A DNA stretch of 64,000 nt from Ministeria vibrans ATCC 50519 (taxonomy: Eukaryota > Protista > Filasterea), in contig CALSCP010001443.1 in assembly GCA_943704425.1 (NCBI GenBank), forward strand, positions 44,299-108,298, in the 5' to 3' direction. Positions 59,809-64,000 of this stretch are shown piece after piece. Numbering within the stretch: position 1 is the first letter of the stretch; each line of letters begins with the position of its first letter. Below the pieces are notes generated by a model. The model did no database searches. It was not told the origin of the DNA and saw only the letters and a program-made list of their open reading frames with translations. The translations under genes were made by a program, and so were the position numbers.

Positions 59809-59842
59809 CCCTAACCCTAACCCTAACCCTAACCCTAACCCT
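59809..59842 (+). repeat. Interstitial telomeric repeat (CCCTAA)5
   Basis: Five perfect CCCTAA units plus CCCT. Confidence 0.95.
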
Positions 59843-60550: not shown

Positions 60551-60947
60551 AATAATAATAATAATAATAATTATTATAACATTAATTTTTATAATATAAT
60601 AAATTTATTATTAATGTTTTTATTATTATTATTATTAATTCCGTGACGCAACTATAGTTATCCACAACGTTACTATAGTCTTGGCTTAGTTGGCTACCCT
60701 TATTATAAGAAGGAATGATCAGTGTGACCAATGAGATCAGGGAATATTCGCCAGACGCTTCAAAATTAATTCAGAATTTTTCACGACTTTTGCCCTTCAA
60801 AGAATTCTACACACAACCACGACCGCTACAGTAAGCCAAAAATGGGCCAGGGGGTTGTGTGTGTCCGTTTGCGGGGGTCGGCGATGCGTGGCGCGGGCGG
60901 GATGTACCGTCACATATGACAAAGAAAAAAAACCGTCCACCGACCGG

Positions 60948-60995
60948 GTCGAAGGACGGTCAAAGGATGGTCGAAGGACGGTTAAAGGACGGTCG
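60948..60995. repeat. 11-mer tandem repeat GGTC(G/A)AAGGA(C/T) x~4
   Basis: ggtcgaaggac ggtcaaaggat ggtcgaaggac ggttaaaggac ggtcg. Confidence 0.85.
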
Positions 60996-61836
60996 AGCGC
61001 AAACATTCAAACGAAATCGCCTGCGTATTTTCGCGTGTTGTGTGTTGCCAGAGTTTGGAGGCATTGGTTGGGTAAGGGTGGTGGCGACGGGGGGGAGGTG
61101 CAGGCGGTGGGTTTTACGGGGAAGGCTGAGCGTTCTTTTGTTGCGATTTTCCCGTACGTACAAGTGGGGAGATTGCCAGCGTATTTTGTGTTCGTATGTT
61201 ATTAGGGGTTAGTGTCAGTGGCTGTGTGAATAAGAGTGTGCTGGGGGTGGTGACGGCACTATGCTATGGCAACTGCGACGGCGAGAATACCAGTTTTTGT
61301 GACTTCTTTGTGACGCTGTGACGTGTGAAGCAAAAACGAAAAAAGATATCTTTGCTGTATTGTCGGGTGCCGTATGATCGCAGGGGTTGTGTGTGGTGTT
61401 TGGGCGGTGGAAATGGCGGGGGTTGACCGGGATCCAAGCAAGATTTTTGTGATGCCACATGTTCGCCAGAGGTTTGGAAGAAGTTTGGAAAATCGTTTTT
61501 CGTCACGTGAAAAATTTGACGTTCTCCTCCCCGTTGACATCAGCGGTTGGGATGTGTCTTTTTTACGGGGTCAGCGATGGCTGGCGGGCTTGGGAACTAT
61601 AGCCCCGTGACTGGAAATGCAATACTATATTGCATGACAATTGTACCAATGTTTATGACTCCTTTCAGATTTTGCCCTTATCGAGCCGAAAAAACGATAA
61701 TGGCTGCGTGTGTTTTGTGTGTATGTGTGGAGAGATCAAGAATTTGGTTTCGTGTTTGTAACTGTGTGCCATTATTTGTTGTGTGAGTTGATGCTGAACT
61801 TTCCCGTTTCCCTCTCCAACAGCTCCTTTGAAGAAA

Positions 61837-62586
61837 ATGCAGATCGCCATTGTTCCTGCCGTCATCATGATGATGCTTCTGGTCTCGTCGGACGCTGGTC
61901 CTGTCGCTGGCGGTGGCTGCTTTACTGCCTGCTTCAGCGCATGTGCGGCAATGGGTCCCGGGAAATTTGCGGCCGTCGTTGGTATTGTCTTTGACATTGC
62001 TGGCTGCGCGGCTATGTGTGGTCCCGTATGCGCCATGGGCCTGGCTATTCCGGGCATTTGCTTCGACACCAGCACCACCTTTTCCATCCCTACAGTGAGC
62101 AACCCTACCTCAGCGCTGGAGTTTGCCGAGATTGCAGCAGATGGTGTTAAGGCTGGGTATCAAATCGTGACTCTGTCTTCAAACGGACAACCCATGCTGG
62201 CCAATGTGACTGCGGCAACTGTCATTCCTGGAGACTTTAACTTTGTAGAGATGCATTTTGTCAGCAAAGACACTAACATCACTCAGACGCTGACAGTCAC
62301 CACCAACCACGGCGTTATTGTCGTTGATCCTAACAACGTGTACAACTCGAACGACGACAAGATCATCCCGGCCGGCAATGTCACACTGGGACAAGTCATG
62401 CGCGGAAAGCACAACACCCTTTTTACGGTGGTGTCCACTCACCGTCTCAACCGACAGCGCCAACACTTCATACAAACGGATGTGGGGACTGTCTTGGCCT
62501 CTGGCATCCTTACCTCAACGTCCTGTGTGCACGACGATGCCATTTCTACTCAAAATTTGAGTCCCATCATCGACAATGACTGCTAA
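61837..62586 (+). CDS. Secreted Cys-rich peptide fused to a Hedgehog/intein (Hint) autoprocessing domain, intronless
   Basis: Signal peptide (residues 1-20), 54-aa six-Cys peptide, then Hint block A I|CFD (Cys75 at 62059), VKAGYQIVT, block B LTVTTNH, IPAGNVTLGQ, and C-terminal IQTDVGTVLASGILTST. Confidence 0.85.
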   Translation: MQIAIVPAVIMMMLLVSSDAGPVAGGGCFTACFSACAAMGPGKFAAVVGIVFDIAGCAAMCGPVCAMGLAIPGICFDTSTTFSIPTVSNPTSALEFAEIAADGVKAGYQIVTLSSNGQPMLANVTAATVIPGDFNFVEMHFVSKDTNITQTLTVTTNHGVIVVDPNNVYNSNDDKIIPAGNVTLGQVMRGKHNTLFTVVSTHRLNRQRQHFIQTDVGTVLASGILTSTSCVHDDAISTQNLSPIIDNDC

Positions 62587-63177
62587 CTCCCCCCAAAAAA
62601 AGTTTATTGATTTTTATAAAATCTTCTGACTGATAACACTACAATTGAATTAAGAGAGAAAAAAGGATTGCGTTAGTTAGCAGAGGTATGAACCAGAATA
62701 TTCGGGACTATTTTTTCAAAGCTGGCAAAAAAAACTGAAAACTTAACTGGAAAACTAAAACTGAAAACCGAGCCCTGGGAATACAAGACTGGGTTACAGG
62801 CGGAGCTGAGATATGACACTTTTGGGCGGCAGCGCAGTAGGTGAAGAACGCAGTGATAAGCCACGAGCAGGGGGATGGCCCGAGAGACAAGGTCAAACGA
62901 GTAAGGATGGGTAAAAGCACGCAAGTGCGCGGCTCGTGATATCTCAATACAGTCTAGGTAGTAGTAAGAAGGCAAGTTAAACAAATGATGATGTACAAGT
63001 CAGGGTCCAAGTAGTGTTAATCAAGGGATGTAGAGTATCCAAGGCACACTACTCAGCGCGTTCACATACACTTTTTACTGCCTCTGAGTCAATAAAATTA
63101 ATAATAATAATTATTGTTTATTTCGTTTGATTGATAATAAATTGGAAATGTATTCTTCTTCTTCTTCAATAAATTGT

Positions 63178-63459
63178 TTATAACCACCTATGTCTAAAAG
63201 GATCATTAATATCATACTCGTACAAGACATCAATCAAGTAACTGCGAGATAAAACTTTAAATTCATCGGCAATTTTATAATACTCCTTCCATGACCCAAA
63301 TTCTATTATTTGGTTCTCATGATTGTAGTACAATGTTGCCATCCGAGCAAGGCTATATTTACTGTATTTGAGCATGCGCCTACGGAATTCGACATATAAT
63401 CCTCCTGCAATAACATATATATGAGCACAATCAGAAACACTCAATGTTTTACCTCCCAT
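63178..63459 (-). CDS. Short AT-rich ORF of unknown origin
   Basis: 93-aa ATG ORF, Tyr/Lys/Ile-rich, with codon use unlike the GC-rich host exons. Confidence 0.3.
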   Translation of the reverse strand: MGGKTLSVSDCAHIYVIAGGLYVEFRRRMLKYSKYSLARMATLYYNHENQIIEFGSWKEYYKIADEFKVLSRSYLIDVLYEYDINDPFRHRWL

Positions 63460-64000
63460 TTTTGCTATTGTATACTATTGTAGTACATAATAATATTTCC
63501 TTATGCGTTTTAACTAAGGTTATAATATTGGCATAAATGAAGGTGTGGGTTGAGCGGAAGCGCACGATGGCTGCTCTTCTTTGATCGCATCATTGTGTAA
63601 ATATTTTTTTGTAGAGATAATGTGAAAGATTGATTTCAATTTCCGTCAAGCGTCGCGCCGTCTCGTACGTGTTCCAGCGATGCCTATGGCAGTGAGTTGA
63701 GAGTTCAGTCTCTCCGCTCTCTAATCTCTACTTTTGTCCCCAGGTGTTTTTCGATTTTTCTGGTCGAGTCTTCGTCTCTTCGATGAGAAGCGAATGAGTC
63801 ATTTGTTTTTGTCTTTTGAGCTTTTTTTTTTCCATGTGACATCTTTGCCCCCCGCCACATCTCAAACGTCACAGGGAACCAGGTTCTTGAAGTCGAGTCA
63901 AACGACGAACCCACTCATGCCTCAGATGCCTTCTCCCTAAGGCGACAAATGTAGCCGAGCGTGCCACAAATTGAGATTGGGAAGCGAGCAGGAACCACTA

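Follow-up and report, generated by a model that had tools for sequence, protein, structure and literature searches.

The Ministeria vibrans gene analysed here encodes a precursor of 249 residues that consists of a predicted signal peptide, a six-cysteine cargo peptide and a Hint domain of the Hedgehog type. The gene is real and expressed: three studies yielded spliced transcript contigs, in which an intron of 992 nt is removed from its 5' untranslated region (5'UTR). The Hint assignment, which combines sequence profiles with a predicted structure, is solid. The precursor is probably a single-turnover, self-cleaving protein that releases a small secreted or membrane-associated peptide. The family that it represents, in which a CX3CX3C peptide is fused to a Hint domain, is apparently undescribed: we could not find the architecture described in the literature searched, the coverage of which falls short of most subscription journals.

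In the following, the window is the whole stretch of 64,000 nucleotides that was analysed, and all coordinates are positions in the window. The features of the gene are listed below.

60775..60830, + strand: 5' untranslated exon 1 (minimum extent; 60830 is spliced to 61823 in contigs of X10, X11 and X13)
60831..61822, + strand: 5'UTR intron, 992 nt, GT..AG (992-nt skip in three runs from three studies)
61823..62644, + strand: exon 2, comprising the entire coding sequence and a short 3'UTR (contig ends range from 62593 to 62644)
61837..62586, + strand: coding sequence, 249 codons and a stop, all within one exon
61837..61908, + strand: predicted signal peptide, residues 1-20 or 1-24 (hydrophobic core; predicted cut after Ala20 or Ala24)
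61909..62058 (from 61897 if the start is Gly21), + strand: cargo peptide, Gly25-Ile74 (twin CX3CX3C, 6 Cys, 21 Gly+Ala)
62059..62526, + strand: Hint domain, Cys75-Cys230 (structure match to 1at0, Foldseek, family profile, Pfam)
62059..62061, + strand: Cys75, position-1 nucleophile, with the scissile bond at Ile74-Cys75 (conserved in 60/60; aligned with Hedgehog Cys258)
62299..62310, + strand: block B TTNH, Thr155...His158 (Thr 59/60, His 60/60; aligned with Hedgehog TPAH)
62518..62526, + strand: end of the Hint domain, Thr228-Ser229-Cys230 (Thr or Ser 56/60; Cys230 58/60)
62527..62583, + strand: acidic, non-conserved tail of 19 residues after Cys230 (no SRR/ARR)

Gene structure and expression

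On reading the sequence, the open reading frame (ORF) begins with the ATG at 61837 and ends with the stop codon at 62584-62586. Spliced transcript contigs from three studies cover it completely, and on the exon 1 side one of these contigs (record 3 of run X13) reaches about 25 nt past 60800. The spliced leader contains no upstream start codon, and an in-frame stop is present there. In runs X6-X9 the intron is partly retained or serves as an alternative start; for example, an unspliced contig (X6, record 9) covers 61124-62644. Between strains, the only coding difference seen is synonymous. A foreign origin was also considered on the basis of composition and was rejected, since the GC3 of the ORF (0.60) lies inside the range of the other long ORFs of the window (0.44-0.69).

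The Hint domain

An earlier note, made from the DNA letters, had proposed a Hint domain of the Hedgehog type and had suggested profile searches as a check, and searches by profile and by structure bear it out. When the model of residues 75..230 is compared with known structures by VIA-align, it superposes on chain residues 258..402 of 1at0 (Hh-C17) with a Z score of 20.9 and an rmsd of 1.6 A over 138 residues; 84 chains are found at Z>=8 and, among the matches listed, all are Hint proteins. Foldseek gives an E-value of 7e-8, with Hedgehog-C and inteins as the top matches. At the sequence level, the family profile matches Drosophila Hedgehog-C across the full domain (E 2.6e-11), and hhalign relates it to the genome's own Hog paralogue with a probability of 96%. 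The Pfam family PF01079 matches 46 of the 60 relatives at E<0.01 (best 7e-13); the Ministeria protein alone scores 17.9 bits (E 0.0025) against a cut-off of 29.7. A phmmer search of the PDB sequences with the single protein found nothing, so that the relation to Hint proteins is visible only by profiles and structure.

The residues associated with the N-S acyl shift are conserved. The Cys-Phe pair at the junction, residues 75 and 76, is encoded at 62059-62064, and the block-B TxxH that had been reported as intact is indeed present as TTNH at residues 155-158. The last strand, GTVLASGILTST, is also Hedgehog-like, as had been noticed. Furthermore, it had been claimed that a Thr replaces the terminal Cys of Hedgehog. 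This holds by alignment, since Thr228 is aligned with Hedgehog Cys400 (C143) in three independent alignments, but the claim overlooked the near-invariant Cys230 two residues on. The domain ends with Thr-Ser-Cys. Behind it come 19 more residues here and none in relatives, and the HN end of inteins is absent, in agreement with the first reading. Note that the residue preceding the scissile bond is Ile, compared with Gly in Hedgehog, which speaks against the view of a self-cleaving precursor.

At some other positions the protein departs from its relatives or from Hedgehog. It has Ala at two positions that are conserved in the family, Thr122 (54/60) and Asn127 (42/60), and its activity could therefore be impaired. 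The general-base Asp of Hedgehog (D46 of Hh-C, D303 of fly Hh) has no counterpart in it: Asp46 is an insertion relative to the family profile, and the adjoining column is Asn in 42/60 sequences and Ala in the Ministeria protein.

The absence of a sterol-recognition region (SRR), which had also been pointed out, is confirmed, since Cys230 is followed by no more than 19 residues, which are not conserved; in the nearest relatives the protein stops 1-3 residues past this Cys. Outside a 13-member clade that includes the Ministeria protein (SH-aLRT 98), 36 of the 47 members carry a tail of about 25 residues where Hedgehog has the SRR. This tail consists of acidic residues followed by a Trp located 17-21 residues after Cys230 (27 in one member) and then xxxH, and it is absent from the clade. 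The conservation of this tail in most members suggests that, ancestrally, the nucleophile may have come from outside the precursor.

The signal peptide and the cargo

The features that the earlier note had listed (signal peptide, peptide, Cys-Phe, TTNH and last strand) are all present where it had placed them, although the boundary between the first two is less certain than it had assumed. The hydrophobic N-terminus, the core of which spans residues 3-16, ends with SSDA|GP, and a cut at this point would give the 54-aa peptide that had been proposed. However, the stretch ahead of the conserved Gly25 obeys the (-3,-1) rule of signal peptidase across the family, with Ala, Ser or Gly at position -1 in 50/59 sequences; the median leader length is 22 aa. 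This family pattern suggests that the mature peptide may begin at Gly25 and contain 50 residues, rather than at Gly21. The signal peptide itself stands, and the first residue is Gly in either case; Gly at the predicted mature N-terminus is near-invariant (55/59).

The cargo contains Cys28, Cys32 and Cys36 and Cys57, Cys61 and Cys65, that is, CX3CX3C, 20 residues and CX3CX3C again. Of these, Cys32, Cys36, Cys57, Cys61 and Cys65 are kept in 54-59 of the 60 family sequences. In the AF2 model, which was built with 60 sequences and has an overall pLDDT of 83.7, the cargo forms helices at 26-39, 41-48 and 54-66 with a pLDDT of about 70-80. A helical twin-CX3CX3C peptide directly upstream of the Hint domain, as originally proposed, is therefore consistent with both the conserved pattern and the predicted helices 26-39 and 54-66.

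Lys43 and Asp53 are the only charged residues of the cargo, and its GRAVY is 1.45. The Kyte-Doolittle mean in a 19-residue window reaches 1.92 at residues 46-64, compared with 1.24 for the first half of the cargo. The N-X-S/T sequons of the precursor lie in the Hint domain (123, 147 and 181) and the tail (240), with none in the cargo. The computed reduced average mass is 4656.6 Da for Gly25-Ile74 and 4981.0 Da for Gly21-Ile74; the linear forms with three disulfides (less 6 Da) would be about 4651 Da and 4975 Da, respectively.

Searching the peptide alone against Pfam, with or without its leader, gave no family at E-values up to 10, and the ESM Atlas gave no usable match for it. With the whole protein, the ESM Atlas returned only unnamed clusters, some of which contain Hint.

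The first reading had expected a variable cargo on a conserved Hint domain, and the reverse was found. Compared with the four nearest relatives, the cargo is 70-88% identical and the Hint domain 32-40%, and in 48 of 59 comparisons conservation is higher in the cargo. Since the cargo is under the strongest constraint, we take it to be the functional molecule.

Distribution of the family

Sequence searches recovered four homologues at E 1e-39 to 3e-47 and 91 representative clusters at E<1e-3. The sources include metagenomes, Tetrahymena, a mushroom, a whitefly and small-genome bacteria, and bacterial members with Sec-type leaders exist. An exhaustive search found no stand-alone gene for the peptide, which is always fused to Hint; the short matches are all incomplete: some still continue into Cys-Phe, others are truncated before it, and others end where an intron is likely. 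Paralogues of the peptide had also been anticipated, but the gene is single-copy in the M. vibrans genome, where searches for another copy of the peptide, or for another family member, returned the locus itself and nothing more than a weak match to the Hint part of an ordinary Hog gene. A scan of the GTDB genomes and IMG/VR viral contigs with patterns from 11 sequences gave no confirmed match; this result means little, because the patterns would miss the known bacterial members as well.

Proposed mechanism

In the mechanism that we propose, the signal peptide would direct the precursor to the ER and would be cut off just before the conserved Gly (Gly25, possibly Gly21). The cargo of 50-54 residues would fold into a short three-helix unit with helices 26-39 and 54-66 antiparallel and with the CX3CX3C rows 28/32/36 and 57/61/65 opposite each other, probably forming a three-rung disulfide ladder. 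The Hint domain (75-230) would then perform an N-to-S acyl shift at Ile74-Cys75, aided by Thr155 and His158, and generate a thioester. By comparison with C143 of Hedgehog, a branched intermediate on Thr228 or Cys230 is possible; for the thioester and branched-intermediate mechanism of Hedgehog, see PMC12054796. Finally, a nucleophile would resolve the thioester and free the peptide from the spent Hint domain, which would have acted as a built-in solubilising pro-domain and protease.

Because the clade of this protein has neither an SRR/ARR nor the sterol-activating Asp, we take water as the likeliest nucleophile; the chance that water resolves the thioester and leaves a linear product is about even. 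Hint domains without an SRR make the thioester but hydrolyse it slowly in vitro, as is the case for Hh-C17, and in nature the outcome may therefore be something other than simple hydrolysis. As for the function, our guess from the composition is that this extremely hydrophobic product works, most likely, within or at a membrane, be it as a toxin, an antimicrobial or a signal.

Alternative explanations

A first set of alternatives concerns the fate of the thioester. That the Hint domain uses it to modify the C-terminus of a cystine-ladder peptide, by cyclisation onto Gly, by thiolactone formation or by transfer to an acceptor, and that it does so throughout a widespread, undescribed one-gene family, seems to us rather doubtful. 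Transfer would proceed as in Hedgehog, to a lipid or sterol or to some other acceptor, whether small or macromolecular (a protein or a cell-surface amine), and would leave the peptide covalently tagged or anchored. Hedgehog-C is the nearest solved structure and Tetrahymena BIL2 is among the structural matches (Z 17.9), the latter reportedly attaching the domain upstream of it to lysines (PMC8616854); moreover, 36/47 members outside the clade carry the conserved tail at the SRR site. We nevertheless consider transfer unlikely, since that tail is lost in the clade in question, the cholesterol-activating Asp of Hedgehog has no counterpart, no acceptor can be named, and the cargo is so hydrophobic that a lipid anchor appears needless. 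Loss of the tail is, in turn, a point for head-to-tail cyclisation, which the first reading had put forward and in which the alpha-amine of the N-terminal Gly would attack the Ile74 thioester and yield a circular cystine-ladder peptide of about 50 residues, because the clade has no tail with which to recruit an outside nucleophile. The near-invariance of this Gly (55/59) and the consistent absence of the peptide without Hint point the same way, as does the geometry: an antiparallel ladder (28-65, 32-61 and 36-57) would bring both termini to one end of the hairpin, and the lengths of the two overhangs are inversely related across the family (Spearman -0.63), adding up to 12 in 24 members and to 9 in 13. 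However, this correlation depends on two or three clades and not on independent events, and the conserved tail of most members suggests another acceptor. Engineered intein cyclisation makes use of an N-terminal Cys; compared with such a Cys, the unactivated amine of a Gly is poorly suited to attack a thioester. No Hint or Hog domain is known to us to cyclise its cargo in nature, nor did the literature searched yield one. We regard cyclisation as distinctly improbable.

There are two further explanations. Given the Kyte-Doolittle value of 1.92 at 46-64, which exceeds the usual threshold of 1.6, and the GRAVY of the cargo, the peptide could instead be embedded in the membrane as a proteolipid-like hairpin or anchor, with the Hint domain on the lumenal or outer side, either shed or attached. 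The only basic residue, Lys43, is located in the inter-helix loop, which fits a topology with both ends lumenal, and all the sequons lie downstream, in the Hint domain and tail. On the other hand, at 14, 8 and 13 residues the predicted helices are short, with Gly and Pro interrupting them, the first half of the cargo is less hydrophobic, and the facing CX3CX3C rows with constant i+j suit a disulfide ladder. Together with the Sec-type leaders of bacterial members and the invariant catalytic residues, which make an uncleaved anchor unlikely, these observations leave a membrane hairpin with only a slim chance. A chance ORF or a dead gene is a negligible possibility: the protein scores below the Pfam gathering score and, the gene lies downstream of an interstitial telomere repeat, at a distance of about 2 kb, in a region that the first reading took to be accessory and subtelomere-like, but it has spliced transcripts and full-length homologues at E 1e-47, its catalytic and cysteine positions are all intact, and the strain difference is synonymous. 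The reading that we prefer is still the self-cleaving precursor that releases its peptide.

Significance

Hint/Hog domains are known to deliver cargoes of many kinds. To our knowledge, however, almost no such cargo has a known role outside animals. In the family described here the conserved part is the cargo itself, a 50-residue, almost uncharged peptide with six cysteines. That this peptide never occurs without Hint and is scattered over distant eukaryotes and reduced-genome bacteria suggests a portable, selectable activity that needs Hint chemistry. With 249 residues and a single coding exon, the system is tractable for following the fate of the thioester in a Hedgehog-type domain without an SRR, which bears on the evolution of cholesterol transfer. 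If the product were cyclised or adducted, it would represent a new kind of eukaryotic ribosomal peptide biosynthesis and, if the C-terminal modification holds in general, a new ribosomal route common to protists, fungi, an insect and intracellular bacteria.

Comparison with known systems

CX3C helical hairpins, such as plant alpha-hairpinins and small Tim proteins, consist of two antiparallel helices, each with Cys at i and i+4. The Cys pattern and the predicted helices of the cargo are similar to these. In contrast to them, the cargo would have three rungs rather than two and has a 20-residue middle with its own short predicted helix; it is also extremely hydrophobic, has no homology detectable by Pfam and is made by another route.

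Inteins share with the precursor the Hint fold, Cys1 and the block-B TxxH. The precursor differs from them in that its domain does not end with His-Asn, precedes no C-extein and is not inserted in a host protein, from which it is expected only to cleave and not to splice.

The closest system is Hedgehog-C (Hh-C/Hog; PDB 1AT0 and 6TYY), which has the same order of signal peptide, cargo and Cys-Phe junction, the same block-B TxxH, and the same last strand, G-T-[IV]-L/V, and which likewise ends soon after Hint with no C-extein. Unlike Hedgehog, the precursor has neither the Hedge signalling domain nor the SRR of 60-70 residues nor Asp46/D303. Ile instead of Gly precedes the scissile bond, and Thr occupies the position of C143/C400, with a conserved Cys two residues on.

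Very short cargoes directly before a Hog domain, as found here, also occur in Xiphinema Shog1 and Shog2 and Trichinella Xhog3, which have a signal peptide and a predicted cargo of 15, 25 or 34 residues (PMC2362128). These short-cargo Hogs of nematodes and the protist Hogs keep the ARR, which the present precursor does not have, and their cargoes are unrelated (PMC2362128). Replacement of the motif-J Cys by Thr, Ser or Asp is found in several non-metazoan Hogs (PMC2362128). In the haptophyte example of Burglin 2008 (PMC2362128) the Hog domain is better conserved than the cargo, whereas here the order is reversed; a CX3CX3C cargo is not described in that paper.

BIL domains and Tetrahymena BUBL/BIL2 (PDB 2LWY and 6Y75) have the same Hint fold (Z 17.6-17.9), with a weaker relation in sequence (E about 3e-3, compared with 2.6e-11 for Hedgehog). 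The BUBL cargo is ubiquitin-like and cytosolic, whereas the cargo here is Cys-rich and predicted to be secreted. As proposed here, these domains perform autoprocessing outside the host-protein context of inteins, and the transfer by BIL2 to an acceptor amine is a precedent for resolution of the thioester by something other than a sterol (PMC8616854).

Gene structure and transcription

The coding sequence is a single ORF on the forward strand, and each sequence feature that the earlier note had listed was found where that note placed it.

Features of the gene and its product
61837 (ATG) to 62584-62586 (stop), + strand: ORF of 249 codons
Residues 1-20 or 1-24, + strand: hydrophobic leader
Cys28, 32, 36 and Cys57, 61, 65, + strand: Gly/Ala/Cys-rich segment
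Cys75-Phe76, + strand: start of the Hint domain
Residues 155-158, + strand: TTNH
GTVLASGILTSTSC, + strand: final strand, ending at Cys230
19 residues after Cys230, + strand: acidic tail

Assembled contigs of public transcript runs were aligned to window positions 60800-63800. Runs X10, X11 and X13, each from a different study, each give a contig that connects 60830 with 61823, skipping 992 nt with GT..AG ends, spans the entire ORF and ends at 62593-62627; these contigs represent a spliced mRNA whose 5'UTR is interrupted by an intron in the genome. The spliced leader contains an in-frame stop and no ATG was found in it, so the start codon is that at 61837. Runs X6-X9, which carry a different organism label, give an unspliced contig (61124-62644) that has the same 3' end as the spliced mRNA and represents either a second start within the intron or intron retention. 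This contig shows two intronic T>C differences, at 61553 and 61784. The sole coding difference between the runs and the window is synonymous (62193 C>A). Only one copy of the gene occurs in the 29.7-Mb assembly searched, and its GC3 of 0.60 is similar to that of neighbouring ORFs. Both the structure of the gene and its expression are established.

Some features of the surroundings were also recorded. Five perfect TTAGGG units, none of which would be expected by chance, lie on the - strand at 59809-59838, about 1 kb upstream of exon 1. The contig ends where the window ends, and there is no terminal repeat at that point. Several unrelated contigs of runs X6 and X13 match only at 60850-60883, just inside the intron, and at 63128-63175, in an AT-rich stretch downstream; they share 33-40 nt and then continue into unlike sequence, and the two sites are probably short dispersed repeats.

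Assignment of the Hint domain

Taken alone, the window protein scores 17.9 bits against Pfam Hint (cut-off 29.7) and has no match among PDB sequences. When 1.84 billion representatives were searched exhaustively with phmmer, 91 clusters passed E<1e-3 and 28 passed E<1e-10; most are of 200-280 residues and match end to end. When 60 members of this family were aligned, 46 matched PF01079 (best E 7e-13), and the family profile aligned with the whole Hint domain of Drosophila Hedgehog-C at E 2.6e-11, inteins ranking behind at E 1e-5 and worse. The same profile matched one ordinary Hog gene of the same genome with an hhalign probability of 96%. In the AlphaFold model made from the 60-sequence alignment, pLDDT averages 83.7 and exceeds 90 across most of residues 100-230. 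Residues 75-230 of this model superpose on residues 258-402 of Hh-C17, the Hedgehog-C Hint structure, with Z 20.9 and an rmsd of 1.6 A over 138 residues, compared with Z 15-19 for inteins and BIL domains; Foldseek on the first model agrees with this result. The Hint call of the earlier note is therefore borne out, and what had been a guess is now a well-supported homology. Conservation across the 60 members shows that the residues needed for the N-to-S acyl shift are under strict selection.

Conservation of key residues in the family
Cys75: 60/60
Phe76: 52/60
Thr155: 59/60
His158: 60/60
Thr228 (Thr or Ser): 56/60
Cys230: 58/60

Six further loci, on other contigs of the same genome, exceed the Pfam Hint cut-off, with E 4e-34 to 3e-17. 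One of these (L005) has thrombospondin-type repeats immediately before Gly-Cys-Phe, and another (L002) keeps a Hedgehog-like SCYA followed by a His-rich motif.

The cargo peptide

A conserved Hint domain carrying a variable cargo had been expected, and the reverse was found: identity to the four nearest relatives is 70-88% in the cargo and 32-40% in the Hint domain. In 48 of 59 comparisons conservation is higher in the cargo than in the Hint domain, although the figure for distant members is somewhat inflated by low sequence complexity. The search for cargo paralogues, also proposed earlier, found no second gene with the same cargo in the genome, and exhaustive phmmer searching found no stand-alone cargo gene, its short matches being fragments. 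The cargo is thus conserved and always tied to a Hint domain; it matches no Pfam family.

The position of Gly25 is Gly in 55 of 59 members, preceded by Ala, Ser or Gly at -1 (50/59) and by a small or aliphatic residue at -3 (55/59), and the median leader length is 22 residues. Because a signal-peptidase pattern precedes this Gly, the mature peptide probably begins with it in most members. In the window protein, cleavage is predicted at either Ala20|Gly21 or Ala24|Gly25; the 54-residue peptide proposed earlier is possible through the former, but the family pattern also allows the latter, which would give 50 residues.

Gly25-Ile74 contains 11 Ala, 10 Gly and 6 Cys, and its only charged residues are a single Lys and a single Asp; its GRAVY is 1.45 versus 0.04 for the Hint domain, and the Kyte-Doolittle 19-residue mean is 1.92 at residues 46-64. 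Helices are predicted at 26-39, 41-48 and 54-66 (pLDDT about 70-80). Six is the commonest Cys count of the cargo in the family, and Cys32, 36, 57, 61 and 65 are each present in 54-59 of 60 members. The two rows of Cys have a constant sum of positions (28+65 = 32+61 = 36+57), as an antiparallel three-rung Cys ladder requires, and would pair accordingly. Judging by composition, the predicted product should enter membranes; it may be either a stapled peptide that is soluble or a hairpin embedded in the membrane.

Distribution of the family

In a quick ML tree, the window protein falls in a six-member clade (SH-aLRT 96) nested in a 13-member clade (98) whose proteins end 1-19 residues past Cys230. 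A conserved C-terminal tail is present in 36 of the 47 members outside the larger clade: acidic residues directly follow Cys230, and a Trp 17-21 residues further on (27 in one member) is followed by xxxHis. In position this tail corresponds to the SRR of Hedgehog, and it may serve as a minimal adduct-recognition region; the clade of the window protein has lost the tail.

Individually identified members
Bemisia tabaci (whitefly): 52.8-Mb chromosome record, annotated only as 'Hint domain-containing protein'
Crassisporium funariophilum (mushroom): 3.8-Mb scaffold
Tetrahymena utriculariae (ciliate): family member annotated
Bacterial MAG (G001): 1.3 Mb, two copies, amid Omp85, TamB and RNase E genes and adjoining FYVE and Lcl_C proteins
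Related bacterium (G006): 2.0-Mb genome, one copy

Most remaining members come from environmental assemblies, where their contigs are about 1 kb long. For some 90 clusters the spread is very patchy, and the whitefly, mushroom and ciliate members are not grouped by taxonomy in the tree. Matches occurred in three of 41 relatives searched; the bacterial members (L009, 8001-8750; L012; L013) are full-length, with Sec-type leaders and in small genomes. The FYVE and Lcl_C neighbours in L009 suggest that the bacterium is host-associated and that genes have moved between domains of life.

Proposed mechanism

A precursor that cleaves itself in a single turnover is the simplest interpretation. The protein would enter the ER and lose its leader, the cargo would fold oxidatively, a thioester would form at Ile74-Cys75 and possibly shift onto Thr228 or Cys230, and the cargo would be released. 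Since the clade lacks both the tail and the activating Asp, we give water about an even chance of being the nucleophile that resolves the thioester, and consider an external acceptor unlikely. Attack by the peptide's own N-terminal Gly, which would cyclise the cargo, is judged slightly less likely still. In its favour, that Gly is conserved, the cargo is obligately coupled to Hint and both termini would lie at one end of the predicted hairpin. The lengths of the two overhangs are also inversely related (Spearman -0.63), but a few clades account for this correlation, which does not count as independent evidence. The remaining probability falls to other outcomes, for example a thiolactone or no cleavage at all.

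Comparison with known systems

In Hedgehog, Hint is followed by the SRR, whereas the window protein has nothing SRR-like there. Inteins end in His-Asn and are followed by a C-extein; the window protein has neither, which excludes protein splicing. The lack of an SRR and of the His-Asn end had been noted earlier, as had the Thr in place of the terminal Cys of Hedgehog: three independent alignments put Thr228 at the position of C400 (C143), where the branched thioester intermediate was recently demonstrated to be carried (PMC12054796). The conserved Cys of the family, Cys230, lies two residues beyond this position, and Thr, Ser or Asp at the C400 site has already been described in non-metazoan Hogs (PMC2362128). 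When Hedgehog is aligned with the family, its cholesterol-activating Asp (D46) lies in an insertion; the adjacent family column holds Asn in 42 of 60 members and Ala in the window protein. The residue preceding the scissile bond is Gly in Hedgehog but Ile in the window protein and mainly Ala, Ser, Val or Leu in the family.

A literature search for the architecture of leader, CX3CX3C cargo and Hint found no description of such a family. The nearest precedent was noted by Burglin in nematodes, whose Hog proteins include some with a predicted cargo only 15-34 residues long (PMC2362128). The window protein is probably a Hog-type autoprocessing precursor that lacks an SRR and carries a new, highly conserved cargo.
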